From Ranitomeya imitator (taxonomy: Eukaryota), in assembly GCF_032444005.1 (NCBI RefSeq), contig NC_091288.1:223820001-223884000 (forward strand): a DNA stretch of 64,000 nucleotides. Direction: 5' to 3'. Of the stretch, positions 3,001-61,391 are shown in pieces; position 1 is the first letter of the stretch; every line of letters begins with the position of its first letter. The notes beneath the pieces were generated by a model. It saw only the letters and a list, made by a program, of their open reading frames with translations. It did not search any database and had not been told where the DNA came from. The translations under genes were made by a program, and so were the position numbers.

Positions 3001-3508
3001 ATTTCTGTCTATCAGCCTAACCGACCGCTGCGCTCTGCAAATGACTTTCGGCTAACCTCTGCACTAATCCGTACCTCCCACTCTCGACTCCAAGACTTCT
3101 CCCGTGCTGCGCCAATCCTCTGGAATGCTCTACCCCAAGATATTAGGACCATCCACAACTTGCATAGTTTTAGGCGCTCGCTCAAAACACATTTGTTCAG
3201 AGCGGCCTACCACGTTCACTAATCAAAGTCATTTTATGTTTGTGTGCAGCCCATTCACTATCTCCATCTACCCTCCACCCCCTGAAGATGGCCGGACCCT
3301 CATTGTAAATACATCATTGTAAATACACACCTGTACTCTGTATCTCCCCACCTCATTGTAGATTGTAAGCTCTCACGAGCAGGGGCGGCTTATTTTGCTT
3401 TATTGTATTGTTAACGTTGTTACCTATGACTGTTGTGTTTGAAACTGTTAAACTGTAAAGCGCTGTGGAATATGTTGGCGCTATATAAATAAAGATTATT
3501 ATTATTAT
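80..3508 (+). mobile_element. L2/CR1-group LINE, near-complete ORF2 (APE endonuclease + RT), inactivated by stops and frameshifts
   Basis: ORF pieces 308-670 (LLALTETW, HGGGVG), 776-1342 (LILGDFN, DGNTLDLVF, SDH), 1424-1876, 2051-2491 ([23 protein letters not shown]) and 2473-3222 ([17 protein letters not shown]) are colinear with L2 ORF2. The 3' end is ...ggcgctatataaataaag(att)n ending at about 3508. The 5' boundary is approximate. Confidence 0.93.
308..367 (+). other. 2A-like (StopGo) motif at the N-terminus of the L2 ORF
   Basis: Translates as LLFIFLLLLISGDISTNPGP; compare the 2A consensus D(V/I)ExNPG|P. Confidence 0.7.
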
Positions 3509-21876: not shown

Positions 21877-22818
21877 TTAATGTAAGGTCATTCTCAGATT
21901 GAGTTTCCTGATGGCGTTCTTCATTTCTTTATTCTTCAGACTGTAGATCAGGGGGTTGATGGTCGGGATTATCACACAGTAGGACAGAGCCAACATCCTG
22001 TCCTCATAAGGAGAAAATGGATTGTCCAATCGAAGGTGAACAAACATGGCGGCTCCAAAGAAAATAATAACAGAGACCAGATGAGAACCACAGGTAACAA
22101 AAGCTTTATGACGAGACTCTGCAGAACGGAGGCGGAATATTGAGTTCAGGATCTTGATATAAGAGCAGATTATTAATATAGTTGGGAACACGGTCGCAAC
22201 TATAGACACAACTAATTGATACATCTTGACCATATATGTGTTGGCACAAGCTATTGTCATCATTGGAGGAACGTCACAGAAGAAATGAGCAATAACATGA
22301 GATCTGCAATACGGCAAATTGTACATCATAACACATTCAATGGTTGCATTCCCAATTGCAAACACAGATATACAAAGTGTCACCCGATAACAAAAGCTGA
22401 CAGACAACACAGACCTGTATCTGAGGGGGTGACATATGGCCGTGTAGCGGTCAAACGCCATCACTGTGAGTATGGCACATTCATAACCAGCAGTAGCTAT
22501 AAATATAAAGAACTGCAGGAGGCAGCTAAACGTGGAGATGGTCCTTCCTAACGGGATGTAGCTGTGAAGAGCCTTAGGAACCGTGGAATTGATGGACACA
22601 AGCTCAGTGAATGACAAAACCTTCAGGAAATAATACATTGGAGAATGGAGTCGAGGACTGAGAGTGACTGCCACAATAATGAGACCATTGCCAACCAACG
22701 AGAGAAGATAAGAAAGAAGAAAGAAAATAAATAAAGACACCTGGGACATAGGAGACAAATCTGAGAACCCAAGAAGAATAAACGTTGTCCCATTACTGGG
22801 AGTCTCTCTTCTCTTCAT
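21877..22818 (-). CDS. Olfactory receptor, class II, 313 aa, intact (OR-B), paralog of OR-A
   Basis: Same OR motifs (LHSPMYYFL, MAFDRYTAICHPLRY, HFFCDVPP, KAFVTCGSHL, PTINPLIYSLKN); ATG at 22818, TAA at 21877. Confidence 0.97.
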   Translation of the reverse strand: MKRRETPSNGTTFILLGFSDLSPMSQVSLFIFFLLSYLLSLVGNGLIIVAVTLSPRLHSPMYYFLKVLSFTELVSINSTVPKALHSYIPLGRTISTFSCLLQFFIFIATAGYECAILTVMAFDRYTAICHPLRYRSVLSVSFCYRVTLCISVFAIGNATIECVMMYNLPYCRSHVIAHFFCDVPPMMTIACANTYMVKMYQLVVSIVATVFPTILIICSYIKILNSIFRLRSAESRHKAFVTCGSHLVSVIIFFGAAMFVHLRLDNPFSPYEDRMLALSYCVIIPTINPLIYSLKNKEMKNAIRKLNLRMTLH

Positions 22819-35100: not shown

Positions 35101-37666
35101 GTATGCCTCCTAGGCTGACTCCAGCATGTCCAACAGGGGGCAGGAATCTCTACTGCTATGCATGCCTCCTAGGCTGACTCCGGCATGTTCGAAAGGGGGC
35201 AGGAATCTCTGCTGCCATGTATGCCTCCTAGGCTGACTCCGGCATGTCCGGCAGGGGGCAGGAACCTCTGCTGCCATGTATGCCTCCTAGGCTGACTGCG
35301 GCATGTTCGACAGGGGGCAGGAACCTCTGCTGCCATGTATGCCTCCTAGGCTGACTGCAGCATGTTCGACAAGGGGCAGGAATCTCTGCTGCCATGTATG
35401 CCTCCTAGGCTGACTCCAGCATGTCCGGCAGGGGACAGGAACCTCTGCTGCCATGTATGCCTCCTAGGCTGACTCCAGCATGTCCGGCAGGGGACAGGAA
35501 TCTCTGCTGCCATGCATGCCTCCTAGGCCGACTCCAGCATGTCCAACAGGGTGCAGGAATCTCTGCTGCCATGCATGCCTCCTAGGCTTACTCCGGCATG
35601 TCCAACAGGGTGCAGCAGTCTCTGCTGCCATGCATGCCTCCTAGGCTGACTCCAGTATGTCCGGCAGGGGACAGGAACCTCTGCTGCCATGCATGCCTCG
35701 TAGGCTGACTTCAGCATGTCCAGCAGGGGACAGGAACCTCTGCTGCCATGCATGCCTCCTAGGCTGACTCCAGCATGTCCAGCAGGGGGCAGTAATCTCT
35801 GCTGCCATGCATACCTCCTAGGCTGACTCCAGCATGTCCGGCAGGGTGCAGGAATCTCTGCTGCCATGCATGCTTCCTAGGCTGACTCCAACATGTCCGG
35901 CAGGGGGCAGGAACCTCTGCTGCCATGTATGCCTCCTAGGCTGACTCCAGCATGTCCGGCAGGGGGCAGGAACCTCTGCTGCCATGCATGCTTCCTAGGC
36001 TGACTCCAGCATGTCCGGCAGGGGGCAGGAATCTCTGCTGCCAAGCATTCCTCCTAGGCTGACTCCAACATGTCCGGCAGGGGGCAGGAACCTCTGCTGC
36101 CATATATGCCTCCTAGGCTGACTCCAGCATGTCCAGCAGGGGGCAGGAATCTCTGCTGCCATGCATGCCTCCTAGGCTGACTCCAGCATGTCTGGCAGGG
36201 GACAGGAATCTCTGCTGCCATGCATGCCTCCTAGGCTGACTCCAGCATGTCCGGCACGGGACAGGAACCTCTGCTGCCATGCATGCCTCCTAGGCTGACT
36301 CCAGCATGTCCGGCATGGGACAGGAACCTCTGCTGCCATGCATGCCTCCTAGGCTGACTCCAGCATATCCGGCAGGGGACAGGAACCTCTGCTGCCATGT
36401 ATGCCTCCTAGGCTGTCTCCAGTATGTCCGGCAGGGAACAGGAACCTCTGCTGCCATGCATGCCTTCTAGGCTGACTCCAGCATGTCCGGCAGGGGACAG
36501 GAACCTCTGCTGCCATGTATGCCTCCTAGGCTGACTCCAGCATGTCCGGCAGGGGACAGAAACCTCTGCTGCCATGTATGCCTCCTAGGCTGAATCCAGC
36601 ATGTCCAACAGGGGGCAGGAATCTCTACTGCTATGCATGCCTCCTAGGCTGACTCCAGCATGTCCGGCAGGGGGCAGGAACCTCTGCTGCCATGTATGCC
36701 TCCTAGGCTGACTTCAGCATGTCTGGCAGGGGACAGGAATCTCTGCTGCCATGCATGCCTCCTAGGCTGACTCCAGCATGTCCAACAGGGGGCAGGAATC
36801 TCTACTGCTATGCATGCCCTCTAGGCTGACTCCAGCATGTCCGGCAGGGGGCAGGAATCTCTGCTGCCATGTATGCCTCCTAGGCTGAATCCAGCATGTC
36901 CAACAGGGGGCAGGAATCTCTACTGCTATGCATGCCCTCTAGGCTGACTCCAGCATGTCCGGCAGGGGGCAGGAACCTCTGCTGCCATGCATGCCTCCTA
37001 GGCTGACTCCAGCATGTCCGGCAGGGGACAGGAACCTCTGCTGCCATGTATGCCTCCTAGGCTGACTCCAGCATGTCCAACAGGGTGCGGGAATCTCTGC
37101 TGCCATGTATTCCTCCTAGGCTGACTCCAGCATGTCCGGCAGGGTGCAGGAATCTCTGCTGCCATGTATGCCTCCTAGGCTGACTCCAGCATGTCCAACA
37201 GGGTGCGGGAATCTCTGCTGCCTTGCATGCTTCCTAGGCTGACTCCAGCATGTCCAACAGGGTGCGGGAATCTCTGCTGCCATGCATGCTTCCTAGGCTG
37301 ACTCCAGCATGTCCGGCAGGGGACAGGAACCTCTGCTGCCATGTATGCCTCCTAGGCTGACTCCAGCATGTCCAACAGGGTGCGGGAATCTCTGCTGCCA
37401 TGTATGCCTCCTAGGCTGACTCCAGCATGTCCAACAGTGTGCGGGAATCTCTGCTGCCTTGCATGCTTCCTAGGCTGACTCCAGCATGTCCAACAGGGTG
37501 CGGGAATCTCTGCTGCCATGCATGCTTCCTAGGCTGACTCCAGCATGTCCGGCAGGGGACAGGAACCTCTGCTGCCATGTATGCCTCCTAGGCTGACTCC
37601 AGCATGTCCAACAGGGTGCGGGAATCTCTGCTGCCATGCATGCTTCCTAGGCTGACTCCAGCATGT
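32105..37666. repeat. 59-bp satellite, right part, about 94 copies
   Basis: Resumes in register after the Gypsy-2 3' LTR; regional variant blocks. Confidence 0.98.
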
Positions 37667-41646: not shown

Positions 41647-42784
41647 AGGCCATGTTCACACAGTGCGTTTTTTACCGCGGAACCGCGGCGGTTTTGCCGC
41701 TGCGGTTCCGCAGCTGTTTTCCATGCAGGGTACAGTACACTGTACCCTATGGAAAACAGGACACACTGTGCACATGGTCCGGAAATTGTAAAAAAAAAGA
41801 CGCGCTGAATAGCTCCCGGAAAAAAGAAGGAGCATGTCAATTCTTTTTCCGGAGCCGCAGCGGTTCTGCACCCATAGACCTCCATTGTGAGGTCCAAACC
41901 GCAGTAAAACCCGCAGATCAAAAATATATCTGCGGGTTTTACTGCGGTTTGATGTGCAGAACCGCTGCAGCAGGAAGTGCGGGGAGCGGGCGGAAGTGCG
42001 TGGGCGGAGTGTGGCTGCCCCCCCCGTGTTCCGATCCCGCCCCCCGTGCTCCGATGCCCCCCCCCAGTGCTCCGATGCCCCCCCCCCCAGTGCTCTGATG
42101 CCCCCCCCGTGCCCTAATCTCCCCCCCTTATACTCACCCGGCGTCCCGGTGTCCGTCCGGCCGTCTTCTCCCTGGGCGCCGCCATCTTGCAAAATGGCGG
42201 GCGCATGCGCAGTGCGCCCGCCGAATCTGCCGGCCGGCAGATTCGTTCCAAAGTGCATTTTGATCACTGAGATATAACCTATCTCAGTGATCAAAATAAA
42301 AAAATAGTAAATGACACCCCCCCCCCTTTGTCACCCCCATAGGTAGGGACAATAAAAAAAATAAAGAATTTTTTATTTTTTTTTTNNNNNNNNNNNNNNN
42401 NNNNNNNNNNNNNNNNNNNNNNNNNNNNNNNNNNNNNNNNNNNNNNNNNNNNNNNNNNNNNNNNNNNNNNNNNNNNNNNNNNNNNNNNNNNNNNNNNNNN
42501 NNNNNNNNNNNNNNNNNNNNNNNNNNNNNNNNNNNNNNNNNNNNNNNNNNNNNNNNNNNNNNNNNNNNNNNNNNNNNNNNNNNNNNNNAACCCTAAAAAA
42601 ATTCCTAGAAAACACACAGACTCTGGCTAGAAAACTGCATAAAAAAACGCATCAAAAAACGCATCAAAAACGGACCAAAAAAGGACCAAAAAAAGGACCT
42701 GCGTTTTCTGCCAAGAGCTGCAGTTTTTTAAAAAACAGTCAGGAAAAAAAAAGGATGGAAATCCTGAACGTGTGAACATACCCT
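41647..42784. mobile_element. Harbinger-type MITE spanning the assembly gap
   Basis: aggccatgttcacac ... gtgtgaacataccct termini next to TAA-like sites; host Tc1 sequence continues on both sides. Confidence 0.65.
42386..42588. other. Assembly gap (N run)
   Basis: 203 N bases. Confidence 1.
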
Positions 42785-43911: not shown

Positions 43912-44406
43912 GCACAAAAACAAAACTATGTGAAAGATGATGAGATGTCACACATCTGCCTGTGACACAACAGTAGATAGTACAGCACAAAATGACATAA
44001 AGTAATAATCAGATCTCAAAAATATCGATCAAAACCAACATAGAAATACCTTAAACTTCTGAGAAAAAACTGCATCTAGTAATACAGCACCAGGTATGTG
44101 GTTCCTGGGCTTTACCCATATGTCATGGTGTATACTGTAGGTCCATAGTGTGTGGTGGCCTTTGGTTCTGATGGTGACACCCAAACCTTAATGGTGGCCA
44201 CCTGCTCATCATAATGACCTGTTAGCACTGATCATGACCCCTAGGTTCGGATGGTGACCCAATGATGTTGATGATGACATTTGGTATAATTGATGAGTCT
44301 CTGATCTGATGATGAAGCTTTGGCAATGGTGTTGGCCTCCTAATATTGCTGATGATGACGAGTCTTTCGTTATAATAATGATCCCTCTTCAGTGATTATG
44401 ATGATG

Positions 44407-44915
44407 AGTCTTCGGTGATAGTAATCACTCTTCGGTGATGGTGATGATGACTCTTCGGTGATAGTAATCACTCTTCGGTGATGGTGATGATGACTCTTCG
44501 GTGATAGTAATCACTCTTCGGTGATGGTGATGATGACTCTTCGGTGATAGTAATCACTCTTCGGTGATGGTGATGATGACTCTTCGGTGATAGTAATCAC
44601 TCTTCGGTGATGGTGATGATGACTCTTCGGTGATAGTAATCACTCTTCGGTGATGGTGATGATGACTCTTCGGTGATAGTAATCACTCTTCGGTGATGGT
44701 GATGATGACTCTTCGGTGATAGTAATCACTCTTCGGTGATGGTGATGATGACTCTTCGGTGATAGTAATCACTCTTCGTTGATAGTGATGATGACTCTTC
44801 GGTGATAGTAATCACTCTTCGGTGATGGTGATGATGACTCTTCGGTGATAGCAATCACTCTTCAGTGATTGTGATGATGACTCTTCAGAGATAGTAATCA
44901 CTCTTCGGTGATGGT
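44407..44915. repeat. 43-bp tandem repeat (20+23 subunits), about 12 copies, in the predicted 3'UTR
   Basis: ctcttcggtgatagtaatca-ctcttcggtgatggtgatgatga; period 43 (44451 and 44494). Confidence 0.95.
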
Positions 44916-44970
44916 GACTCTTTGGTTACAATGATGATGATGACTTCCGCACTTGCTGATTTCAGATTCT

Positions 44971-45045
44971 TCACAATGTCACGCTCAGGACGATAATCAG
45001 CACAACGAGTAACAAGAGGATGACACCCCCGATAATCCAGAGCAC
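44971..45045 (-). CDS. TIR-like gene, last coding exon (C-terminal transmembrane anchor)
   Basis: Acceptor tttgtctcttag|; encodes VLWIIGGVILLLLVVLIIVLSVTL followed by TGA. Confidence 0.8.
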   Translation of the reverse strand: MLWIIGGVILLLLVVLIIVLSVTL

Positions 45046-45728
45046 CTAAGAGACAAACACAATTACTGACACATTGTATCAGCCGTATGACAGCGCTCCA
45101 CCATCCTGACCCTGCGATCAGATCTTCTCATCATGGCTTGTTCTCTAAGATTACATTCACGATGAATGTTCCCTCATTTTCCACTTTGTCCCTGTTCACA
45201 TTGTCTGTTCGCTATTGAACACTGGAGTGGGATTAAATCTAGAGGAAACATTCCATTCTCTGAGGTTCCAGACGTGGATCCATAGGAGGAAAATCTCAGT
45301 TCTTGCTCCCAAAATAAAGTCTTAGATTGACGGGAGCAGATTATATTAGTAAGCCATTGTTTGGGCAAGAAATCTCTATGAAGTCACCCCCAGTCGGGAG
45401 ATGACCTCCATATTATACAAGGTGAAGAGTCCCAGAGTAATGTCTGTGGGGTACCAGACGACTACAAGCCCCGATAATGACAAAAGAGAAGCTGCAGTGT
45501 ACAGCAAGAAGGCCAAGGTCCTGTACTTATCTGAGTGCTTAGTGCAAGATGTGGCCAGTGCTCCGGATAGTCAGCAATTACCTTGTCCTTTCTCCAGCTT
45601 TTTTGGCCCTTTTAATATAAAGAAATAATCAAAGTCAGACATGAGGTAGAAGAGTTCACCACATCTCCAGTCATTAATGGTCCATATCTGGCAGACCCCC
45701 CATTGTACCGGTCTGACGCATTATATCA

Positions 45729-45729
<1 letters not shown>

Positions 45730-45789
<60 letters not shown>
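45730..45789. repeat. (TA)n microsatellite, about 30 units
   Basis: Seen directly. Confidence 0.99.
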
Positions 45790-45792
<3 letters not shown>

Positions 45793-45889
45793 ATAACTGT
45801 AATGGGTTTATTGTGAAAGAGAGGAGCCAGAAGACGGGGCATATGATTTCCACTTCTCCTGCGCTGACTGGAAGCACTTCACATTTATA

Positions 45890-46455
45890 TTAAATGGTGC
45901 AGGTTTATTTTAGCAGTGCAGGGGTTAATCTGCTCAGGTGAGCTCCGGGAAGCTTTCCTGCATTAAGGCTCCCAGCTGTTCACTGTTAGCTCCTCCCATC
46001 TCCTATATTACCTTGGCCCTGGCTAACACTCATTGTCAGAGAAGCTTATGCTGCATGGCTGGAGGTTGGTGGTGGTTGTTATTGGAGAAGGCGTTTGATG
46101 GATTTATCTGTGACTGTTGCTAGGTTTTGAGTGTGTGATAATTCCCTTTCTTCTCCTACTTTAGTTAAACCCCATCCTCCACTCCCTGATGCATTCCTCT
46201 GTTATATGTGTGAGTATATTTGTATGCTTGGTTTATTTCGTTACCCCTGTCCTTATTATCTTGTTAGTCAGGTTGATGTACTACAGTACACTACTACTCC
46301 CCTCTTCCCTGGGTGGGGGAAAGGTACAGACTGAGGGCGGATGCAGGAGCTCTGACACGGTACGTGGCCCTGGCATCTTCACCATCAGAAGTAATTCGGG
46401 GAGCAGGGCGAGCTAGGGTGCCCCTAGCATTAGAGACAGGGAAGGAGCCCCGACA
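45890..46455. mobile_element. Possible truncated LTR fragment
   Basis: Composition and ending (..gagctagggtgcccctagcattagagacagggaaggagccc) are LTR-like, but no clear TG..CA termini or TSD were found. Confidence 0.35.
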
Positions 46456-46988
46456 ACGAAGTTATGACTAATAACTAAGCTATGCTGTGACAGATGTCAC
46501 TAGTGCCATCTGACCTTTAATATGGTCAATTAGGTTCCTTCTCGTTTTTTTTTTAATTTTTGTTTTTTTTCCATCAAACCTCCTGATGACCCTACAAAGT
46601 CTAGAGAAAATAAGATTGCTGTCACTCCACCCTGTGAATCTTATTCAGCCCATTATTTGGGAGCTGTCAAGTTCCCCTTCCTATACCTAAAACTATGACT
46701 GGTCTGGAGGAGATAATACAATCCTGTCCACTCTTCCCTCATCATGGAAACTCAGATTTGAAGAACTAAATGGACAGATTGTAGAAGGATCCCATCATGA
46801 CCCCCTAAGGGCCATTAGACCACCCTCTATTCTACATGACATGACCACATTTCTGGTTGGTGTAAAATTTACCTTTTCGTTATTGTCGTTGTGCTGGGAA
46901 ATCTATAATAGAAAAAGATAAATCAATGTATGGAGATGTAGAGTGCTGCCCTGTGTAGAAGGCCCATCGCCCGTCAGGCCTAACTCAC

Positions 46989-47039
46989 CGGTAAGCTGTC
47001 GGACGCGTTTCTGCCGTTGTTGTCACTGATGAGGTTTCT
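46989..47039 (-). CDS. TIR-like gene exon (51 nt, phase 0-0)
   Basis: ttttttatag|...|gtgagt; RNLISDNNGRNASDSLP. Confidence 0.8.
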
Positions 47040-47859
47040 CTATAAAAAATAGGAAAGAACTAATTTTCAGCCACCGGAGGAATAGTAAAGATAGAGCCCC
47101 TCATGGTGCTGGATGAGCCGGGGATCTGTTCTCCCACCCAATCCCAACTCATGAACTTCAGGATGAATACAATGTGCAGACGAGAAGGATTTGTGGCCGA
47201 CTGTCACTGCGAATTTCACCCATTGTCCGGGCAGTGACATAACATGAAGTCTCGGATAGGACACTAACTATCATGGGTCTGCAGTAGTAGTGGTCTTGTC
47301 ATATGGGCCACAGGAACCTCCAAGCTCCAGGACCAGCTGCATCCCCGCTGCACCCATGATACTAGCGCTCCTGAGTCCGGGGCAGGAGAAACATACAGGG
47401 ACGGATATAATAATCCTGTACAAGAAACAGGCATGGTGCCGCAATTTGTTCTTGTATATTAAGCCACACCTTCTCTCCCCTTAAGCCACACCCTCTTCCA
47501 CAAAGCCACACCTTTTCTCATGAAGACACACTCCCAATCACAAAGTATTTCTTACAGTGCCACACCCTCTTCCACAAAGCCACACCCTCTTTTTCAAAAT
47601 ACCACACCCCATTCACAAGATCCACGCCCTTTCACATGGTGCCACACCCACTTGTAAAAAGCCACACCCTATTTCCAAATAAGGGGTTAACAGTATTATA
47701 AGCACATATATAGGCCTATAAAAAGTGGTGTCAATTTGCATCAAAAGGTTTGAACATTTGTTGCATTTTCCTCCAAAGTTGAGGCGTAAACAATAGCAAA
47801 TTCTGAGTACGATATGGCGGCATTATTATCACTGCTATCAGAAACCCGGAGACTCGCAC

Positions 47860-47879
47860 CTCTTCATCGTTCCTCAGAT
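47860..47879 (-). CDS. TIR-like gene microexon (20 nt, phase 1-0)
   Basis: ttacatttcag|atctgaggaacgatgaagag|gtgcga; (D)LRNDEE. This exon supplies the phase change needed to reach the TM frame. Confidence 0.7.
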
Positions 47880-48080
47880 CTGAAATGTAAGATAAAGTCA
47901 TCAGAATTCTAAGAACTGTTATTACCACTATTATTACTACTACTCCTATTATCTTCTGTTATTATTTCCTCCGGTCACACGATGATAAAACCCGTGGGCA
48001 GGACATGAACCGCATGCATTAATGTCCGGTGGTGACCGATAGGGGCTGGGAGGTTGGAGGGTGCAATTAGCCCAGGGTGA

Positions 48081-48290
48081 TGTGAGAGGAGAGAAGAGGA
48101 GAGAAAAGGAGAGAAGAAGAGAGAAGAGGAGGTAGAGAAAAAAAGAAAGGAGAGAGGAGAGAAGAGGAGAGAAAAGGAGAGAAGAAGAGAGAAGAGGAGG
48201 TAGAGAAAAAAAGAAAGGAGAGAGGAGAGAAGAGGAGAGAAAAGAAGAGGAAAGGAGAGAAGAGAAGTAGAGAAGTAGAGAAGAGAAGGG
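48081..48290. repeat. Polypurine (GAGAA-rich) tract
   Basis: Almost exclusively A/G on the plus strand, with an internal duplication. Confidence 0.9.
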
Positions 48291-48409
48291 TGATGGGTGG
48301 ACGCCGCCCCGGGGACCCCAGGTACAGTGTCCTGCTGCCATAACCCCATGTCCATGGCCCTGGGGGCAGATAATGATACAGGACCCCTGGGGGGCTCTTC
48401 ACTCCTCAC

Positions 48410-48448
48410 CTGAGCCGGGTCGCTGGGACGATCGGACGCTGGTGTCAT
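48410..48448 (-). CDS. TIR-like gene exon (39 nt, phase 1-1)
   Basis: tctcttgtctccatcag|...ggctcag|gtgagg; (D)DTSVRSSQRPGS. Confidence 0.75.
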
Positions 48449-48709
48449 CTGATGGAGACAAGAGAGATCATAAGTTACAATGATAACAGTTCAGAGCAAT
48501 GACAATGACGTAACCACCCGAGCATCACAATGAGCTCCGCACACCGCAGAGACATCGCCAGGAATAATCAGGACTTATGTAGGTGTCTTGTAGCACATGG
48601 ACAACTTTTGGGGCATTTTTGTTCTGATTGCTTGTTCTTTTGTCTGTAAAGCATTTCTGGAATAGGGTATTCTTAACAAGTTTGCACAGTTTGTCTTTTT
48701 CAACCTCTG

Positions 48710-50530
48710 TGTATCACTGTACATAGCAGGCTGCAGAATGAGTTACCAGGGATCAGTCAGGCAGCTCGTCTGTAACACTTATCTCCCTTCTCCTGGACCA
48801 TCTTCTACATCCTCTTTATATCACTGTACATAGCAGGCTGCAGAATGAGTGACCAGGAATCAGTCAGTCAGCTTGTTCTGTCTGTAACACTTATCTCCCT
48901 TCTCCTGGACCATCTTCTACATCCTCTATATATCACTGTACATAGCAGGCTGCAGAATGAGTGACCAGGGATCAGTCAGTCAGCTCGTTCTGTCTGTAAC
49001 ACTTATCTCCCTTCTCCTGGACCATCTTCTACATCCTCTATATATCACTGTACATAGCAGGCTGCAGAATGAGTGACCAGGAATCAGTCAGTCAGCTTGT
49101 TCTGTCTGTAATACTTATCTCCCTTTTCCTGGACCATCTGCTACATCCTCTATATATCACTGTACATAGCAGGCTGCAGAATGAGTGACCAGGTATCAGT
49201 CAGTCAGCTTGTTCTGTCTGTAACGCTTATCTCCCTTCTCCAGGAACATCTTCTAAATCCTCTGTATATCACCGTACATAGCAGGCTGCAGAATGAGTGA
49301 CCAGGGATCAGTCAGTCAGCTCGTTCTGTCTGTAACGCTTATCTCCCTTCTCCTGGACTATCTTTTACATCCTCTATATATCATTGTACATAGCAGCCTG
49401 CAGAATGAGTGACCAGGGATCAGTCAGTCAGCTTGTTCTGTCTGTAATGCTTATCTCCCTTCTCCTGGAACATCTTCTACATCCTCTCTATATCTCTGTA
49501 CATAGCAGACTGCAGAATGAGGGACCAGGGATCAGTCAGTCAGCTCGTTCTGTCTGTAGCGCTTATCTCCCTTCTCCTGGACTATCTTCTACATCCTCTA
49601 TAGATCACTGTACATAGCAGGCTGCAGAATGAGTGACCAGGGATCAGTCAGTCAGCTCGCTCTGTCTGTAACGCTTATCTCCCTTCTCCTGGACCATCTT
49701 CTACATCCTCTGTGTATCACTGTACATAGCAGGCTGCAGAATGAGTGACCAGGGATCAGTCAGTCAGCTTGTTCTGTCTGTAACACTTATCTCCCTTCTC
49801 CTGGACCATCTTCTACATCCTCTATATATCTCTGTACATAGCAGGCTGCAGAATGAGTGGCCAGGGATCAGTCAGTCAGCTCGTTCAGTCTGTAACAATT
49901 ATTTCCCTTCTCCTGGACCATCTTCTACATCCTCTATATATCATTGTACATAGCAGGCTGCAGAATGAGTGACCAGGGATCAGTCAGTCAGCTCGTTCAG
50001 TCTGTAACACTTATCTCCCTTCTCCTGGACCATCTTCTACATCCTCTATATATCACTGTACATAGCAGGCTGCAGAATGAGTGACCAGGGATCAGTCAGT
50101 CAGCTCGTTCAGTCTGTAACACTTATCTCCCATCTCCTGGAACATCTTCTACATCCTCTATATATCACTGTACATAGCAGGCTGCAGAATGAGTGGCCAG
50201 GGATCAGTCAGTCAGCTTGTTCTGTCTGTAACACTTATCTCCCTTCTCCTGGACCATCTTCTACATCCTCTATATATCACTGTACATAGCAGGCTGCAGA
50301 ATGAGTGACCAGGGATCAGTCAGTCAGCTCGTTCAGTCTGTAACACTTATCTCCCATCTCCTGGAACATCTTCTACATCCTCTGTATATCACTGTACATA
50401 GCAGACTGCAGAACGAGTGACCAGGGATCAGTCAGCTTGTTCTGTCTGTAACGCTTATCTCCCTTCTCCTGGACCATCTTCTACATCCTCTATATATCAC
50501 TGTACATAGCAGGCTGCAGAATGAGTGACC
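48710..50530. repeat. 112-bp tandem repeat, about 16 copies (intronic)
   Basis: Unit tatatcactgtacatagcaggctgcagaatgagtgaccagggatcagtcag...; homologous ORFs at 49741 and 50077 lie 336 bp (3 x 112) apart. Confidence 0.97.
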
Positions 50531-50784
50531 ATTATGCAGATGACTACACAGCCCAAGTCATACAGAGAAAAATAAAGTCCTTCATAACTAGAAGATAATC
50601 TGGAGCGATCATTTACGAAATGGCGGAAATCACAGATGAATTTAAATACTTTTCCCCACATTTCTATTACTCAGATTCACACAATCCCCTAAAGCTGCTT
50701 CGTCTTCCTGCCGCACAGAGGACAAAGCTTCCTCCTCAGGTAAAACTATCTCAGAAAAAGAAATCTCAAGGGGAATAAAATTCA

Positions 50785-51277
50785 AGGGGTTTTTCCCACA
50801 AAGTTAGTTTTATTCAATAGATCTTGTAATAATAATAATTTTCACAATTAAATGTGATAAATAAAATCTTCCTGTGCTGAGATAATCTTATAACTGTGCC
50901 CCTGATGTTCTGTGTAATGGTCGTGTCCGAGTATACAGGAACATGGTCTGATCGTACCACTGCTCCTGGGCGGGGGAGGACACAAAAGAGAATATACAGA
51001 CATTACATATAAGCAACATTTTATCTCAAAGAAAGAATCATCTGTGATCCCGGCTGTAATGTCTGTATACTCTCTTTTGTCCCCCCTGCCCAGGAGCAGT
51101 GGTACGATCAGACCATGTTCCTGTATACTCGGACACGACCATTACACAGAACATCAGGGGCACAGTTATAAGATTATCTCAGCACAGGAACATTTTATTT
51201 ATCACATCTAATTGTGGAAATTATTGTTATTCCAACATCTATTGATTAAAATGAAATTTGTTCTTGGGACGACCCCT
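50785..51277. mobile_element. T2/Kolobok-like palindromic MITE
   Basis: aggggt...acccct ends beside degenerate TTAA-like sites; arms of about 200 bp are near-perfect reverse complements around a short spacer. Confidence 0.75.
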
Positions 51278-51473
51278 TTAGAAGTCCAGTCCCAGACGGC
51301 CGTCCCTCCTTCTATTATGTCCCATCCAGAGCTGAGCTTCTGTGGTATTTGATAACTTTATCCAATGAGATCTAATCTGGGAGATCCGTTCATGACCAGA
51401 CTTTGGTTGCAGAAATCTCCATTGTTCCCAAAGAAGAGAAAGATCCTTCATTGTGCAGTAAGTATCTTCTGAC

Positions 51474-51518
51474 CTGACCCCTGAATGCAGACGGGAAAGT
51501 TTTCAGAAGATATTGGCC
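51474..51518 (-). CDS. TIR-like gene exon (45 nt, phase 1-1)
   Basis: aatgtcttag|...ggggtcag|gtcaga; (G)PISSENFPVCIQGS. The splice sites are weaker than at the other exons. Confidence 0.55.
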
Positions 51519-51599
51519 CTAAGACATTTGCTCTCCATAGTAATTAGTGAAGATCAGTTGGATTTTGCTCCAAGCAGAGAAGGTAAAGACCACCCCATC

Positions 51600-52354
51600 T
51601 GTTATGTAGGCAATCCAGTGACACAGTGTGCCAGCAATCAGAGCACATACAGTGATCTGACAATAACCCAAAAACAATAGAACGAGCTCTGAGACGTGGA
51701 ATCTCTGTAGACTGCAATACCTGATCTATCCTAAACACAACTAAAGGCAGCTGTGGATTGCGCCTGTCACTACCTATGCAACTCGGCACTGCCTGAGGAA
51801 CTGACTAGCCTGAAGATAGAAAAACAAGCCTGACTTGCCTCAGAGAAATACCCCAAAGGAAAAGGCAGCCCCCCACATATAATGACTGTGAGTAAGATGA
51901 AAAGACAAACGTAGGGATGAAATAGATTCAGCAAAGTGAGGCCCGATATTCTAGACAGAGCGAGGATAGCAAAGAGAACTTTGCAGTCTACAAAAAAACC
52001 CTAAAGCAAAAAAACCACGCAAAGGGGGCAAAAAGACCCACCGTGCCGAACTAACGGCACGGCGGTACACCCTTTGCGTCTCAGAGCTTCCAGCAAAACG
52101 AAATGACAAGCTGGACAGAAAAAGTAGCAACAAAAGCAAAAAGCACTTATCTAAGCAGAGCAGCAGGCCACAGGAAAGATCCAGAAGCTCAGATCCAACA
52201 CTGGAACATTGACAAGGAGCAAGGAAGACAGAATCAGGTGGAGTTAAATAACAAAGCAGCCAACGAGCTCACCAGAACACCTGAGGGAGGAAGCTCAGAA
52301 GCTGCAGTACCACTTGTGACCACAGGAGTGAATTCAGCCACAGAATTCACAACA
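51600..52354 (-). mobile_element. Solo LTR of the same chromovirus group as Gypsy-1 and Gypsy-2
   Basis: Reverse complement starts tgttgtgaattc and ends cataaca; TATTTAA at 52250-52244; duplication cccatc at 51594-51599 and 52355-52360. Confidence 0.92.
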
Positions 52355-54133
52355 CCCATCATTCCCCAGAGTCCAATCCCCCTGCTACACCTGGGCAGTA
52401 AAGGCGCCGCACATGGTAGAGAAGGTAAAGACCACCCCATCATTCCCAAGAGTCCAATCCCCCTACTACACCTGGGCATGGATGCAGTAAAGGCGCTGCA
52501 CATGGTAGAGAAGGTAAAGACCACCCCATCATTCCCCAGAGTCCAATCCCCCCTCCTACACCTGGGCATGGATGCAGTAAAGGCGCTGAACATGGTAGAG
52601 AAGGTAAAGACCACCCCATCATTCCCAAGAGTCCAATCCCCCCTCCTATACCTGGGCAGTTAAGGCGCTGCACATGGTAGAGAAGGTAAAGACCACCCCA
52701 TCATTCCCCAGAGTCCAATCCCCCCTACTACACCTGGGCATGGATGCAGTAAAGGCGCTGAACATGGTAGAGAAGGTAAAGACCACCCCATCATTCCCAA
52801 GAGTCCAATCCCCCCTCCTACACCTGGGCAGTAAAGGCGCTGCACATGGTAGAGAAGGTAAAGACCACCCCATCATTCCCCAGAGTCCAATCCCCCCTAC
52901 TACACCTGGGCATGGATGCAGTAAAGGCGCTGAACATGGTAGAGAAGGTAAAGACCACCCCATCATTCCCAAGAGTCCAATCCCCCTTCCTACACCTGGG
53001 CAGTAAAGGCGCTGCACATGGTAGAGAAGGTAAAGACCACCCCATCATTCCCCAGAGTCCAATCCCCCCTACTACACCTGGGCATGGATGCAGTAAAGGC
53101 GCTGAACATGGTAGAGAAGGTAAAGACCACCCCATCATTCCCAAGAGTCCAATCCCCCCTCCTACACCTGGGCAGTAAAGGCGCTGCACATGGTAGAGAA
53201 GGTAAAGACCACCGTGCGTCTGATCCATCATTCCCCAGAGTCCAATCCCCCCTCCTACACCTGGGCAGTAAAGGCGCTGCACATGGTAGAGAAGGTAAAG
53301 ACCACCGTGCGTCTGATCCATCATTCCCCAGAGTCCAATCCCCCCTCCTACACCTGGGCAGTAAAGGCGCTGCACATGGTAGAGAAGGTAAAGACCACCG
53401 TGCCTCTGATCCATCATTCCCAGGAGTCTAATACCCCTCCTACACCTGGGCAGTAAAGGCGCTGCACATGGTAGAGAAGGTATAGACCACCGTGCGTCTG
53501 ATCCATCATTCCCCAGAGTCCAATCCCCCCTCCTACACCTGGGCAGTAAAGGCGCTGCACATGGTAGAGAAGGTAAAGACCACCGTGCCTCTGATCCATC
53601 ATTCCCAGGAGTCTAATACCCCTCCTACACCTGGGCAGTAAAGGCGCTGCACATGTTAGAGAAGGTAAAGACCACCGTGCGTCTGATCCATCATTCCCCA
53701 GAGTCCAATCCCCCCTCCTACACCTGGGCAGTAAAGGCGCTGCACATGGTAGAGAAGGTAAAGACCACCGTGCGTCTGATCCATCATTCCCAGGAGTCCA
53801 ATACCCCTCCTACACCTGGGCAGTAAAGGCGCTGCACATGGTAGAGAAGGTAAAGACCACCGTGCGTCTGATCCATCATTCCCCAGAGTCCAATCCCCCC
53901 TCCTACACCTGGGCAGTAAAGGCGCTGCACATGGTAGAGAAGGTAAAGACCACCGTGCGTCTAATCCATCATTCCCCAGAGTCCAATCCCCCCTACTACA
54001 TCTGAGCAGTAAAGGCGCTGCACATGGTAGAGAAGGTAAAGACCACCGTGCATCTGATCCATCATTCCCCAGAGTCCAATCCCTCCTCCTACACCTGGGC
54101 ATGGATGCAGTAAAGGCGCTGCACATGGTAGAG
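52355..54133. repeat. Composite tandem array: alternating 82/90-bp units (172-bp dimer), then 93-bp units
   Basis: ORF starts at 52674, 52846 and 53018 are 172 bp apart; later taaagg at 53176 and 53269 are 93 bp apart. Confidence 0.95.
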
Positions 54134-54691
54134 TGGATCTACACAGGAAACATTTCATCTGTCCCAACAATCCATCTCCGCGGTGTTTACAATGTGTCAT
54201 AAACTCTTAGCATCCAGGTTAATGATTGAACAGAAGCTCCGAGAAGACACAAGGATCCTGGGGTGAGGTTTGGCTGCCCTGACCACAAATCTGCAGCATA
54301 CGCTGGTGCCTACTTCTTATGACCACCAATCCTAGAAACACCCTCCCAGCGGAGTGACGGCCATAGAAGTATAAGGGAAACGCTCAATCTTTAAGGAGAC
54401 ATGAGCCAACCTCAAATACTGACCATACGTTACCGATTAGAGGAGCAGCACGGATGGGGTTTGTGAACACAACGTTTCTTTATGGAAAGTAGCAGCACAG
54501 AAGCTCCCCATAAAATGTGCACAATGCACACAAAGTCAAGACGTCATGTGCCCATGGTCAGTCTTATAAATTAGGACAGATATGGGGCTTTCCCTCTACA
54601 GAAGGTGTCGATAAGGTCCACTCCGCACCCTGCAACCACAGCCGCCTTCCCCAGCGCTTCTGTCTATTTACCGTCCCCTGTTGCCCTGGGT

Positions 54692-54758
54692 GGGATTAGA
54701 ACTCAGGACACCAGTGCTGCAAGGCTGCTGTGCTAACCACTGCGCCACCGTGCTGCCC
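54692..54758 (-). mobile_element. tRNA-derived SINE head
   Basis: Reverse complement gggcagcacggTGGCGCAGTGGttagcacagcagccttgcagcactggtgtcctGAGTTCTAATCCc, with Pol III A-box and B-box. Confidence 0.7.
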
Positions 54759-54789
54759 ATTCTTTTACTGGTTATATATAGTATTATTG

Positions 54790-55560
54790 GTTCGCATGCT
54801 CTATGAATATCATTCTTATGCCGAGATTCTATCACCTTACCATGGATACTACTTGATTTGATGTCGTATGATTCTCTGGACCTGGTTCTGTACTTAATAT
54901 GTGTTGTTGGTCTCCGGAAATATGGCCGCTGATGGAACGCATGCGCACTGTAATCTACCTGACACTGTGCGTTCTCTGGTTAGCGTCAATTAAACAGGCG
55001 GCGTGCGTGGTTATTGGTGCCATTGAGTGTTATGTAACCCACATGCGCGCTGTGTGATGACGCTGATGGAGTGCACCTTTTCATGTGTAGGGTGTCACGG
55101 GCGCATGCGCCAACTATATTGCTCTATAACTAGTGCGGCAATGACAGGACTTTGTTATCAATTCCCCTTTGAGAAAGCGATTACGCGAAACGTGCGTCGG
55201 GGCCGTGGGAAGATCTCTCTGTAGTCCGGACTAATTATGGGTGAGCATGTACTTTGCCTTATTAATATGTGATGTTACTGGGTGCCTCATATAAGGTAAT
55301 ACTATAGGATAATACTGTGCAATATACATTTAGCACCTGGATATGATTAGTTACATCTAAACACTTCAATTTGCTCACCCTGGTCATACAGTGGACTTGT
55401 GTCCTATCCTCAGTGTAACGCTTGTTTTCTCAAAGTACATTATCGATTTATGGGAGAGCCAAATCATTGAATTATGCTCTCGGCCGTTGATATAAGAACG
55501 TGTTTTTTGACTATTGCGTTTGCTTACATTTCTTCCATCGGAGCGGCGAGCACCTTTCTC
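54790..55560 (+). mobile_element. Penelope-like remnant (pLTR region)
   Basis: Contains a hammerhead at 55164-55202 and gcgcatgcgc motifs; boundaries are approximate. Confidence 0.55.
55164..55202 (+). ncRNA. Minimal type I hammerhead ribozyme, U3:A8 core variant
   Basis: ccct TTGAGAA A gcg-atta-cgc GAAA cgtgcg TC gggg: stem I ccct/gggg (one G-U pair), stem II 3 bp, GUC cleavage triplet. Confidence 0.7.
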
Positions 55561-55799
55561 ATGTTACGTTCAGTCTTATGCCACGTTTGGTAACTGCTTA
55601 ATTGTTCATAAACCCTGCAGTGGTGAAAAGAAGGGACCTGCTCGATCCGCTCTCTATACTTAGAGTAAAAGACGCCAGTGGTGGAGCCACAGCGAGAACA
55701 TCGGCTGTATCAACAATGAAGTCACTGCCGCAAAATGACCACAAGTGTTTTCCAGAAGTGGCTTTGTGTAGGAAGCTGTGTGGGAGCGCCATTGTCTGA

Positions 55800-56330
55800 T
55801 GCACGCCGTGTGCACAGAGCCACATTTCCCTCTGATTGGTCCACACCTTCCATAAAGTTTCTGAGCACTAACATCTCCACTGACCTAAAGGAATTACACA
55901 AAAATCATGTTCCACCAGAACTAAACCATAGAGCTCCTTAATCTCAAGCTGGTCCGTCCCTTACATCTTGGCTCTACAGGAAAATCCTCATAAAAAGTAT
56001 AATTTGGCCTAAAATGACTTCGCTCCTACAAGCTCTCCCAAATACTCTACTACAAACTGTCATCTGTTTTTCAGTAAACTCATCTCTGGCTTTTTGTGGG
56101 GCCACAACAATCCTAGACATTGATTGTCACACCCTGAAGGTGAACCTGACCTCACAGCCCCACTACAATCTCAATAAGCAATCCACCTTCGAGGAATATC
56201 AGACTGGATCCAGCGATGTGCTCCAAAACCTGGATCCACATGGAAGGAACCACAGTGATGAGCAAAAGGGTAACAATGTTGTGACCTTCTGCCTCTCAGG
56301 CTCCATATCTCACCATCCACTACTGCTGTG
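55800..56330 (+). mobile_element. Degraded L1 ORF2 (post-RT) fragment
   Basis: IKFLSTNISTDLKELHKNHVPP and FFSKLISGFLWGHNNPR resemble the L1 IKYLG..L...N..P and FF..L...I..F.W...PR motifs. Confidence 0.55.
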
Positions 56331-56982
56331 AACGTGAGACCACCATCATCTTATAGACGATCATCTTTTCTATCTCAGACATAAATTTCACTTGCAACTC
56401 TTTAGCATATGATTAGTTATGCATCGTAGGGTCAAAGGATTTTTTAAAACCTCCTCTATGTCTTGAAGAAATATATAAAGTCCTCACGTGACGTCCTTCA
56501 GTAGGAAACACATTCCAGGAAAATGAACAATTACTGTACGCAGTACACTCCTAAGCTATAGTTTTACTAAGTCCTAGTTCGGTCACGATGCAACTACTGT
56601 CTAATAGCAGAAAGTCTTGTCACCCCACCTCATCCCCTCCATTTACCCCCATTACCTTCTCCCTCTTATCCTTCTCTCCCCTATTCCTTATTATATACAG
56701 CTTGAAACCCTTTAATCTTTATGTGCTAATAGAAGGCAGGAGATCGGTTTTGTTCCATTGTTTATCAACGAAAGAGCAATAGACCAACCACCTGGTAACA
56801 CATTTAGTTTTCTGCCGTTCTGAGCTCCATACTGGATGTAGAACATGGTTCATGATAGTTGAGATGAGTGTTATAATCCGGAGGTCACACACTGACAGTA
56901 ACACATTCTGCAGTCTGCTATGTGCTATGATACATAGAGGATGTAGAAGAAAAAATGGCCATGAAGTGTAATGGAACCTTAC

Positions 56983-56997
56983 CCGAAAAATGAATAT
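56983..56997 (-). CDS. TIR-like gene microexon (15 nt, phase 1-1)
   Basis: cattattttatttag|atattcatttttcgg|gtaagg; (D)IHFS. Confidence 0.6.
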
Positions 56998-57424
56998 CTA
57001 AATAAAATAATGTAATAAGTCGTCATCCCATAAGGTAAAACCATCTGCTCAATGTTGTGAAAGCATCAAATCTACATCTATTTTACTATCAATGGTCACT
57101 TTGGTGTCATGGAGGAGCAATGACTGACTGCAACACTACCCTCACTAATAGAAGGAGATAACGTAAAGGAGGTGGAGACATGGTCAGGAATATTATCAGG
57201 GTGCGATACCTCAATGTCGTGTTCACCCAGAAAAAGTAAAAGGTCATACAGGTGTTTAATAAGCAGGTCACATCAGGAGAGCGGACAGATCATCTCACTT
57301 TTCCATCTTTTTGAGTGGCTCCGATGCACAAACCATTCATGTAGGAAGAGAACATGAGATGGATTGTAAATCTGAAGATCCCTATATCACACCGCACCTT
57401 CTGGTTGTATCATCAGCGCCTTAC

Positions 57425-57472
57425 CGGGAGACCTGAAGCCACTGGTAGAAGTCACCACTGATGGGACTCGTC
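57425..57472 (-). CDS. TIR-like gene exon (48 nt, phase 1-1)
   Basis: ttttctatttcag|...ctcccg|gtaagg; (G)RVPSVVTSTSGFRSP. Confidence 0.8.
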
Positions 57473-57563
57473 CTGAAATAGAAAACACTCGTGAGAAGAG
57501 TCTAGAGGTCGTAGTCAATCTTTGGCAGAATCTCTGCTCCTCATCATGTCTCGTAGGGTTTAC

Positions 57564-57611
57564 CTGTTCTCCTGCCGACATATGAGGACTCAGACGAGGT
57601 TATTCTGATCA
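57564..57611 (-). CDS. TIR-like gene exon (48 nt, phase 1-1)
   Basis: tatttttatag|...gaacag|gtaaac; (V)IRITSSESSYVGRRT. Confidence 0.78.
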
Positions 57612-57852
57612 CTATAAAAATATAAGTCTTCCCCCGGTGCGGCCCACATCAGTGTGCTGATCAGTGATAGAGACCACCGGCCGGAGCGATGCTGACACTG
57701 ACATGTCCATGCTACATATATACGACCCCGTATTATTCATCTCTATGGTCTGACTACCACTGAGAATCACTGTTCAGCTCCCCTCCGCTGTATAAAATGT
57801 GGTCAGTGAGAACATTTGGCCACTTTACCCCTCCTGGCCCCGTGGCTGGTAC

Positions 57853-58125
57853 CTGTGTTTCTGTATGGAGCATTGTTGATGATGTCCTTCAGTTTAAGCA
57901 GCTTGTGATACAAGGAGCTGTAGGCGTCGTGCAACTGGACAGAGATCGGTGATTCGCTAAAGATTGGATCGGGACCCATCAGACTGGCCGATTCCTTCTC
58001 CTGCTCACTGATGAGGATCAGTTCTGTGGCGTAGGAGTCCAGCCGCTGCTCCTCTAATATCCGCCTCCTGTTACTGTCACCGCTGTCCTCCACATCATCC
58101 ACCAGCACAACCACATTACTTGTCC
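57853..58125 (-). CDS. TIR-like gene exon, second half of the alpha/beta domain (273 nt, phase 1-1)
   Basis: tctgtctccgctcag|...acacag|gtacca; (G)TSNVVVLVDDVEDSGDSNRRRILEEQRLDSYATELILISEQEK...YHKLLKLKDIINNAPYRNT. Confidence 0.88.
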
Positions 58126-58180
58126 CTGAGCGGAGACAGAAGATACTGTAATATCTCATCAATATTCAATAGAAAACGCA

Positions 58181-60100
58181 GTGTGCCGCATTCACAAACA
58201 CCAGCCCGGGTGTCAGAACCCCACATATACCGGCCCTGGTGTCAGATACCACAAACACTGGCCCAGAAGTCAGACCCCACAAATACCGACCCTGGTGTCA
58301 GATACCACAAACACTGGCCCAGAAGTCAGACCCCACAAATACCGACCCTGGTGTCAGATACCACAAACACCGACCCTGGTGTCAGATACCACAAACACCG
58401 TCCCGGAAGTCAGACCCCACAAACACCGGCCCGGGTGTCAGAACCCCACATATACCGGCCCTGGTGTCAGATACCACAAATACCGGCCCTGGTGTAAGAT
58501 ACCACAAACACCGTCCCGGAAGTCAGACCCCACAAACACCGGCCCTGGTGTCAGATACCACAAACACCGGCCCGGAAGTCAGACCCCACAAACACCGGCC
58601 CGGGTGTCAGATACCACAAACACCGGCCCGGAAGTCAGACCCCACAAATACCGGCCCTGGTGTCAGATACCACAAACACCGTCCCGGATGTCAGATCCTA
58701 CATACACCGGCCCGGAAGTCAGATACCACAAACACCGTCCCGGATGTCAGATCCTACATACACCGGCCCGCATGTCAGATACCACAAACACCGGCCCGGA
58801 TGTCAGAACCCCACATATACCGGCCCTGGTGTCAGATCCTACATACACCGGCCCGGATGTCAGATCCTACATACACCGGCCTGGATGTCAGATCCTACAT
58901 ACACCGGCCCGGATGTCAGATCCTACATACACCGTCCCGGATGTCAGATCCTACATACACCGGCCCGGATGTCAGAACCCCACATATACTGGCCCGGAAG
59001 TCAGATACCACAAACACCGGCCCGGATGTCAGATACCACAAACACCGTCCCGGATGTCAGATCTTACATACACCGGCCCGGAAGTCAGACCCCACATATA
59101 CTGGCCCGGAAGTCAGATACCACAAACACCGGCCCGCATGTCAGATACCACAAACACCAGCCCGGATGTCAGACCCCACATATACCGGCCCTGGTGTCAG
59201 ATACCACAAACACCGGCCCGGATGTCAGATCCTACATACACCGTCCCGGATGTCAGATACCACAAACACCAGCCCGGATGTCAGAACCCCACATATACTG
59301 GCCCAGAAGTCAGATACCACAAACACCGGCCCGGATGTCAGATACCACAAACACCGTCCCGGATGTCAGATCTTACATACACCGGCCCAGAAGTCAGACC
59401 CCACATATACTGGCCCGGAAGTCAGATACCATAAACACCGGCCCGCATGTCAGATACCACAAACACCAGCCCGGATGTCAGAACCCCACATATACTGGCC
59501 CGGATGTCAGATACCACAAACACCAGCCCGGATGTCAGAACCCCACATATACTGGCCCGGATGTCAGACACCACAAACACCGGCCCGCATGTCAGATACC
59601 ACAAACACCAGCCTGGATGTCAGAACCCCACATATACTGGCCCGGATGTCAGACACCACAAACACCGGCCCGGATGTCAGACACCACAAACACCGGCCCG
59701 GATGTCAGATACCACAAACACCGGCCCGGATGTCAGATACCACAAACACCGGCCCGGATGTCAGATCCCACATACACCAGCCCGGGTGTCAGAACCCCAC
59801 ATATACCGGCCCGGATGTCAGATACCACAAACACCGGCCCGGATGTCAGACCTCACAAACACCGGCCCGGATGTCAGACCTCACAAACACCGACCCGGAT
59901 GTCAGACCTCACAAACACCGGCCCGGATGTCAGACCTCACAAACATCGGCCCGGATGTCAGACCTCACAAACACCGTCCCGGATGTCAGACCCCACAAAC
60001 ACCGACCCAGATGTCAGATCCCACATACACCAGCCCGGAAGTCAGACCCCACAAATACCGACCCTGGTGTCAGATACCACAAACACCGTTCCGGATGTCA
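58181..60100. repeat. 28-bp minisatellite, about 68 copies (intronic)
   Basis: Unit ccggcccggatgtcagataccacaaaca; period 28 (59701 and 59729). Confidence 0.97.
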
Positions 60101-60419
60101 TAAATCCCTGTGTGGAAGATTCAATTACTATGATTTTTGTAGTCATTATCTGAGCATAGCTTTATCTGTGCTATTCCTATTGATATATTCTGTTATTGGC
60201 TCATTACATATTACGTTATCTTATTCAGAAGGACCTCCTGGTCACTAATCTTCTGTCCTCACACTGTGACTGTGGATGACAGTTGCATCTGTGGTTGTCT
60301 TCGTGCTACACAGCTCTGCCGTGCTCTGACCAAGGTGGGGAACAGTGGGCCCAGTTACCACAGAAGCCATCTCTTTCATGGAGATCAGTTATGTGTTATA
60401 TGAACTTTTGTCTCCTTAC

Positions 60420-60702
60420 CAAAGTGATCTGACAGATCCTTCAGCTCCTCATCATACAGAGAATCGGTCACATTTGCAATATTTAGGCGCCCTCTCTTCT
60501 TGGTGTGGTACAAAATGGCAAAAGAGTTCTGAGACAGGCCGAAGATGAAGTTTTCACCACTGTTGGAAATATATATAGGATTGACCTTCCCCACCAAGCT
60601 CTGAAACATTGCGTAGAAGGAGAGCAGGTTAAACAGCCACTTGTAATTGGCATCTCCATCTCTGGAGAAGATCCCGACCTTGTGATTTTGATTTTTAGTC
60701 AT
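60420..60702 (-). CDS. TIR-like gene, first coding exon (283 coding nt; exon starts at 60721)
   Basis: tttctccccag| at 60721, ATG at 60702, donor TTTG|gtaagg; MTKNQNHKVGIFSRDGDANYKWLFNLL...FAILYHTKKRGRLNIANVTDSLYDEELKDLSDHF. The phase-1 end joins the next exon in frame. Confidence 0.88.
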
Positions 60703-61391
60703 TATATTTGCAGTACCGTTCCTGGGGAGAAATCATAGGAAACATTTCATGTTACTGGTGTGTTGGAATCATGGAGGAGCTAATATCAGTATAACGTGAC
60801 CATCCTCAGTTCATGTTAGTCCCATATTTCCTCTCTATGGCTGATGTGAATCTATCTGCAGGTATTACGGCATGTTCAAAATGAAACCAGCCTAAAGTTC
60901 ACGGAGGTCCTAGGTCCCCCTTGTGATTTGGGTGGGTGAACACCTATACTAGACGGCGTGTCCTGAACTGATGTTGGAGCACCATTTTCATATTTACTAT
61001 GGAGGTTCTCCACTCTACAATCCCTGAATTCAGCCGGACATAGTCATGACTTATACAAGATCACAAAAAACATGTGCTAGACGGTGACTGCAACACCAGA
61101 TACTGTATAACCACAGACAAGGGAGGCGATATTAGATATGGCAGCCAGCCAGAGATGGGGCATCAATAAAACAGAACACAGATCTGGAATCATTGCTGAC
61201 AATTGTATAAAGTGAAATCGGCATCTCTTCCAGTTATCGTCTCTAGATTAACGACGGAACTTCTCATAGAAAACTGCATGAAATAGTTTATACCAAGGGG
61301 TATTCTCAGGGTAATGATGCTTGAATTTCATCGCTGTTATCCATGTGTCATTACCCTGAAAAACCTCCTATGATGAAACATCTTCTACGTG

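Follow-up and report, generated by a model that had tools for sequence, protein, structure and literature searches.

A 64,000-nt window of Ranitomeya imitator DNA (NC_091288.1; all positions below are window coordinates) contains a spliced protein-coding gene on the minus strand, at 44971-60702, for a protein of 281 residues that combines an α/β domain, a disordered linker and a C-terminal transmembrane (TM) helix. The gene is expressed, and its spliced joints from exon 3 to the last exon are confirmed by RNA contigs. The joint explanation that we favour, with a probability of about 0.6, is that this is an expressed, tail-anchored member of a frog protein family, in which a cytosolic domain with a ligand pocket, preferably read as belonging to the TIR superfamily, would serve as a defence or signalling module. 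The locus is a real gene that RefSeq has already predicted, and hence it is not unannotated. The original prediction, of an unannotated-type gene for a TIR-like protein, was mistaken in this respect, as RefSeq gives the exact protein and about 290 named relatives are recorded in more than 25 frog species, all labelled uncharacterised.

The reading frame begins with an ATG at 60700-60702 and ends with a stop codon at 44973-44971. It is assembled from nine GT-AG exons (283+273+48+39+20+51+30+27+75 = 846 nt), and the joined translation of 281 aa is identical to P0158, the NCBI "uncharacterized protein [Ranitomeya imitator]". P0158 was found in the follow-up to a phmmer search, and exons 3 to 8 were placed by mapping its peptides onto the window; AG and GT sites are present at all of them. 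Exon 1 (coding part 60420-60702, 283 nt, residues 1-94), in which the open reading frame and the GT donor are read directly, contains strands β1-β3 and the conserved loop HTKKRGRLNIANVTDSLYDEEL. Exon 2 (57853-58125, 273 nt, residues 95-185), with an AG acceptor, phase 1 and a GT donor, contains strands β4-β5 and the long helix 157-179; both exons match P0158 at 100%. The linker begins in exon 3 (57425-57472, 48 nt, RVPSVVTSTSGFRSP), which is followed by exon 4 (48410-48448, 39 nt, DTSVRSSQRPGS), exon 5 (47860-47879, 20 nt, LRNDEE, phase 1 to 0), exon 6 (46989-47039, 51 nt, RNLISDNNGRNASDSLP) and exon 7 (46873-46902, 30 nt, ISQHNDNNEK). Exon 8 (45582-45608, 27 nt, GQKSWRKDK) provides a basic flank ahead of the TM helix, and the coding part of exon 9 (44971-45045, 75 nt with the stop codon at 44971-44973) encodes the tail-anchor helix itself, VLWIIGGVILLLLVVLIIVLSVTL.

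An optional cassette exon of 48 nt lies at 57564-57611 on the same strand (VIRITSSESSYVGRRT), with AG/GT sites and an open frame. It is skipped by the RefSeq model P0158, and its peptide is found in P0157, P0159, P0160 and P0163. Its inclusion would give a predicted isoform of 297 aa, as judged from the open frame, the sites and the use of the exon by the orthologues P0159 and P0160.

Contigs of four runs, each from a different study, were aligned to 44918-48700. Every joint in them reads CT..AC on the plus strand, that is, GT..AG on the minus strand. The joint between exons 8 and 9 is present in four runs, exon 7 to 8 (45608>46873) in two (X1 and X13), exon 6 to 7 (46902>46989) in one (X1), exon 5 to 6 (47039>47860) in three and exon 4 to 5 (47879>48410) in four, which covers both sides of the 20-nt exon 5. 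Runs for which a joint is not given here still have the exon in their contigs, with single-nucleotide polymorphisms (SNPs), and the lengths add up in X2; X6 contains an allelic form of exon 7. Past 48448, the contigs of all four runs continue with the 3' end of exon 3 in reverse complement. Because that end adjoins 48448, exon 3 is spliced straight to exon 4 over a 9-kb intron. Five studies supply the 15 small contig sets in which exon 2 is complete; 13 sets contain the last exon. At the other end of the gene, contig pieces covering 44918-45043 run with 30-84 more letters through the start of the 3' untranslated region (UTR; 44918-44970, minus strand) and into a 43-bp tandem array. A separate search for contigs encoding the protein returned the genome assembly only, with no transcript contig and no neighbouring gene within 10 kb.

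These joints revise the ten-exon model proposed earlier. Seven of its ten exons (283, 273, 48, 39, 20, 51 and 75 nt) stand. The second exon of 48 nt that it lists does exist, as the cassette described above, but is optional. The exons of 15 and 45 nt that it placed after exon 3 and ahead of the 39-nt exon have no support, exon 3 being joined directly to 48448 in four of four runs, and the real 30-nt and 27-nt exons had been overlooked. The frame is uninterrupted as claimed, but the product has 281 aa, or 297 aa with the cassette, and not 298. The frame of the last exons, named beforehand as the point on which the model could fail, is confirmed by the contig joints. A filtered list of candidate exons recovered only the 48-, 39-, 20- and 51-nt exons of that model.

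Several SNPs distinguish contigs of different studies in linker exons 6 and 7 (46873-47039), for example ISQHN>ISQDN in X6, which suggests that the disordered linker varies between alleles or populations. In R. variabilis, the predicted isoforms P0015 and P0157 of LOC143785030 read past the exon 3 donor or enter another exon and so lose the TM helix, and soluble forms of the protein may exist on this ground. Read-through of the exon 3 donor in the window would end ...GKALMIQPEGAV. The loss of the TM helix from these two isoforms of one orthologous gene, together with the skipping of the cassette exon in the RefSeq model, could also be taken as signs of a transcribed but non-functional or mis-modelled gene, such as a decaying paralogue. 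We consider this very improbable, since all nine exons keep the frame open, the domain and the TM helix are conserved across Anura and the splicing is the same in four studies.

AlphaFold2, with 63 relatives in the alignment, predicts an α/β domain at residues 7-179, with a predicted local distance difference test score (pLDDT) of ~96 over residues 7-180; the domain by itself reaches a pLDDT of 94 and a predicted template modelling score of 0.91. The predicted order of elements is β1 (7-13), α1, β2 (37-44), α2, β3 (61-67), a conserved loop of 16 residues, α3 (84-94), β4 (99-106), α4, β5 (129-134), a short helix and the long helix (157-179). A linker of low confidence follows, and then a helix at residues 258-280. 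The protein has no signal peptide, its N-terminus being polar, and contains one hydrophobic TM helix at the C-terminus (mean Kyte-Doolittle value 3.41). The helix stops two residues before the stop codon and is followed by uncharged Thr-Leu alone. The tail anchor, the missing signal peptide and the lack of basic residues after the TM helix, all part of the original prediction, are therefore borne out by the AlphaFold2 helix, the strong hydrophobicity and the joining of the TM exon in RNA contigs. The high hydrophobicity of the helix and its lack of a basic C-terminal flank suggest that the protein would be inserted post-translationally into a membrane of the endoplasmic reticulum (ER) type, with the domain on the cytosolic side, in keeping with the general behaviour of tail-anchored proteins.

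By sequence similarity, the gene is placed in a large domain family that has no Pfam model, comprises several hundred uncharacterised proteins and has expanded strongly in frogs. With exon 1 as the query, phmmer returned 352 cluster representatives at E-values down to 1e-119, and a profile search gave E-values of 1e-54 to 1e-94; the best 120 matches listed from that profile search, at E ≤ 10, are all from frogs. The approximately 290 named matches examined are all anuran, from Ascaphus and Bombina through the neobatrachians. The motifs GIFSRDG, FAILYHTKxRGRLN, DSLYDxEL and hhhhDD recur over the whole 180-aa domain. The relatives are named "uncharacterized" or have misleading automatic names (golgin-like, ice nucleation-like, eIF3A-like). 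Many contain two to six copies of the domain, and others have a single domain with or without a membrane anchor. One gene model, the Bombina "interferon-induced very large GTPase 1", fuses the domain to a GVIN/URGCP GTPase, and others join it to kinesin or Ig domains; some of these multi-domain models may be merged models. Beyond frogs there is similarity only at the level of structure or language models, to proteins of elephant shark, sea urchin, amphioxus, coral and tilapia. An Atlas search with exon 1 alone gave only a weak lead.

The closest known proteins are those of the frog RefSeq family (R. variabilis LOC143785029/30, X. tropicalis LOC100489478, Pelobates fuscus LOC134571058), whose domain is 45-100% identical over residues 1-185. 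P0158, the window product, is itself a member, and the orthologues share the linker and the tail anchor. Across orthologues identity is 45-87% in the domain and 44-96% in the TM helix; in the linker, which is disordered and evolves fast, it drops to 10-20%, the values outside dendrobatids being 10-30%. A C-terminal anchor is present in 42 of the 255 retrieved relatives, including short paralogues of Bombina, Pelobates, Discoglossus and Xenopus. A literature search returned no relevant paper on tail-anchored TIR proteins in amphibians or on six Xenopus LOC identifiers.

The polar residues S13, R14, H66, R70, R72, N74, D80, S81, D84, E86, D104, D105, Q121 and K138 are invariant or nearly so in the family, and each maps either to the C-terminal end of strand 1, 3, 4 or 5 or to the loop after it. 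Doubly wound α/β folds bind their ligands at the C-terminal strand ends. From the position of these residues we infer a pocket at the C-terminal edge of the parallel sheet. In the predicted structure, such a conserved polar pocket suggests that the domain binds or hydrolyses a ligand of nucleotide type, which would be charged and would be handled on the cytosolic face of an endomembrane. The protein may thereby act as a membrane-tethered module of cell-autonomous defence or signalling. Only indirect signs suggest an immune role, namely the lineage-specific tandem expansion, the fast-changing linker, the allelic variation among contigs and the association with GVIN.

For the fold of the domain, our preferred reading is a very divergent member of the TIR superfamily, a reading that has about an even chance of being right. 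It is favoured by the strict β-α alternation in the AlphaFold2 model, by the top Foldseek probability going to TIR-STING, by the TIR families that are the nearest named Atlas clusters, and by Glu86, which is at least 90% conserved and lies where helix 3 begins, beyond a long loop. UniProt also applies the automatic name "TIR domain-containing protein" to two relatives. One of them is an R. imitator paralogue that has no Pfam TIR match, so the name must come from another signature.

Several results weigh against a TIR assignment. Pfam at E ≤ 10 gave no match for the window exons, the orthologues or 63 family members. The TIR profiles PF01582, PF13676, PF08937 and PF10137 and the PADLOC TIR profiles, ThsB models among them, likewise gave no match at E ≤ 10 among the 63 members and P0117. 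A profile search of the PDB found no solved TIR chain; the protocadherin matches in the PDB sequence search are due to chance. As a TIR comparison set we used the E. coli CFT073 proteins TcpC and ThsB_TIR, for the latter of which an alignment was built. With hhalign the alignment to ThsB_TIR is full-length and co-linear, with a score of 14.7, but this score was reached by 27 of 100 column-shuffled controls. When the domain profile was compared with the single sequences of TcpC (TIR_2), the ThsB_TIR protein and the CheY-type regulator HprR, each probability was below 1%. Foldseek against the PDB gave nothing at E < 1e-3, and in the structure searches the folds of TIR, G domains, flavodoxin-like reductases and CheY receivers come out level; a search of Swiss-Prot models returned the same mixture. 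No significant alignment puts Glu86 on the catalytic Glu of TIR domains. The label "TIR-like" is thus plausible but unproven, as the sequence-profile tests all failed and structure searches do not separate TIR from other folds.

From known TIR domains (those of SARM1, of plant proteins such as RPS4, and of bacterial TIR-STING, ThsB and Cap12), the frog domain differs in having no TIR profile match. Its likeness to the ThsB_TIR profile is at noise level, and G domains fit equally well. The layout of α/β domain, disordered linker and C-terminal TM helix is, as first proposed, unlike that of any classical vertebrate TIR protein, and no vertebrate TIR protein is known to be tail-anchored. Under the preferred reading the domain may retain NAD-cleaving chemistry through Glu86, though this is rather unlikely. 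The fuller proposal, that it is a cryptic NAD(+)-cleaving module of the TIR superfamily and one of several hundred frog-specific enzymes, membrane-tethered or soluble, for cell-autonomous defence, is still more doubtful. In the CFT073 serU island (L002:37764-40301), a gene for a ThsB-type TIR protein (169 aa) and a macro-domain gene stand beside tcpC. Conservation is unusually high in the family of the 169-aa protein: it has 1724 matches, and the 120 listed, from many bacterial phyla, show 70-99% identity.

G domains score as well as TIR domains in the structure searches, and the protein could instead contain a degenerate P-loop-type G domain, a pseudo-GTPase like IRGQ that would serve, in the manner of GIMAP proteins, as a tail-anchored, non-catalytic scaffold for binding partners. 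GIMAP GTPases have the same order of domain, linker and C-terminal TM helix. The frog protein resembles the GIMAP/AIG1 group in its α/β domain of ~180-200 aa with a helical segment and a C-terminal TM anchor, in its lineage-specific tandem expansions and in the G-domain-like structural scores. It differs in having neither a P-loop nor other G motifs nor an AIG1 match in Pfam: the β1-α1 loop reads SRDGDAN, the Walker A motif GxxxxGK[ST] is absent, and the Pfam scan of the 63 members gave no match to AIG1 or any other GTPase. The order of secondary structure also differs at β2-β3, where TRAFAC GTPases have a hairpin and the predicted frog fold has a helix. The match to a sea-urchin protein may fall on the AIG1 domain of that protein or elsewhere in its length. 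On balance we find the pseudo-GTPase improbable, but not negligibly so. A flavodoxin-like or CheY-like binder of a small molecule or cofactor, with a housekeeping role at the membrane unrelated to immunity, accords with the same structural scores and has a somewhat poorer chance again. The 63 members have no Pfam match to flavodoxin, FMN_red or Response_reg, and the restriction to frogs at the sequence level, the dozens of tandem paralogues per genome and the rapidly changing linker are unlike a housekeeping enzyme.

The comparison with MAVS made by the original prediction holds for the generic tail-anchor layout, as both proteins have a folded N-terminal module, a long disordered linker and a C-terminal tail anchor, but not for any other MAVS feature. 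The frog protein has no CARD or death-fold match, its linker is unconserved and has no conserved TRAF or pLxIS motif, and its anchor, without a basic C-terminal flank, looks ER-type rather than mitochondrial. A pLxIS-like "SLPIS" in the linker was rejected, as it occurs in this species only and is absent from P0159, P0160 and P0163.

Chytrid fungus and ranaviruses are driving losses of frog populations, and much of the innate immune repertoire of these animals is unmapped. The family is a concrete and testable candidate for lineage-specific defence or signalling chemistry because it combines several hundred uncharacterised proteins, a confidently folded domain, an invariant charged pocket and repeated membrane anchoring. 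If a TIR-type NADase is confirmed, this would be the first large expansion of TIR enzymes in vertebrates, and also the first to be tail-anchored; it would parallel those that TIRs have undergone in plants, corals and bacteria. If the domain is instead a pseudo-GTPase or a cofactor binder, it would still be a new domain family without a Pfam model, and a frog family this large and unstudied deserves one.

A search of Rfam gave no match, and tblastn detected no paralogue of the gene inside the window. Two intact, closely related olfactory-receptor-like open reading frames of 312 and 313 aa with a seven-TM pattern lie at 4949-5887 (minus) and 21877-22818 (minus), and the gene therefore adjoins a chemoreceptor cluster. 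Two copies of a Ty3/gypsy-type element, with long gag-protease-reverse transcriptase and integrase reading frames, are found on the plus strand at 14121-18300 and at 25314-27263 and 29232-31424; the second is split by ~2 kb with a minus-strand reading frame. Fragments of a reverse transcriptase like that of long interspersed nuclear elements occupy 776-3222. A stretch of 203 N at 42386-42588, 2.4 kb downstream of the gene, is an assembly gap or masked sequence. A 59-bp satellite of 94 copies (32105-37666; 92% matches, GC ~0.60) accounts for the GC-rich block of the composition profile. Tandem arrays are also present within the gene: a 28-bp unit is repeated 68 times in intron 1 (58193-60100), the 9-kb intron contains arrays of 93/172/185 bp and of 112 bp in 16 copies (52355-54101 and 48704-50531), and the 43-bp array of 12.5 copies at 44381-44917 begins 54 nt past the stop codon, within the 3' UTR.

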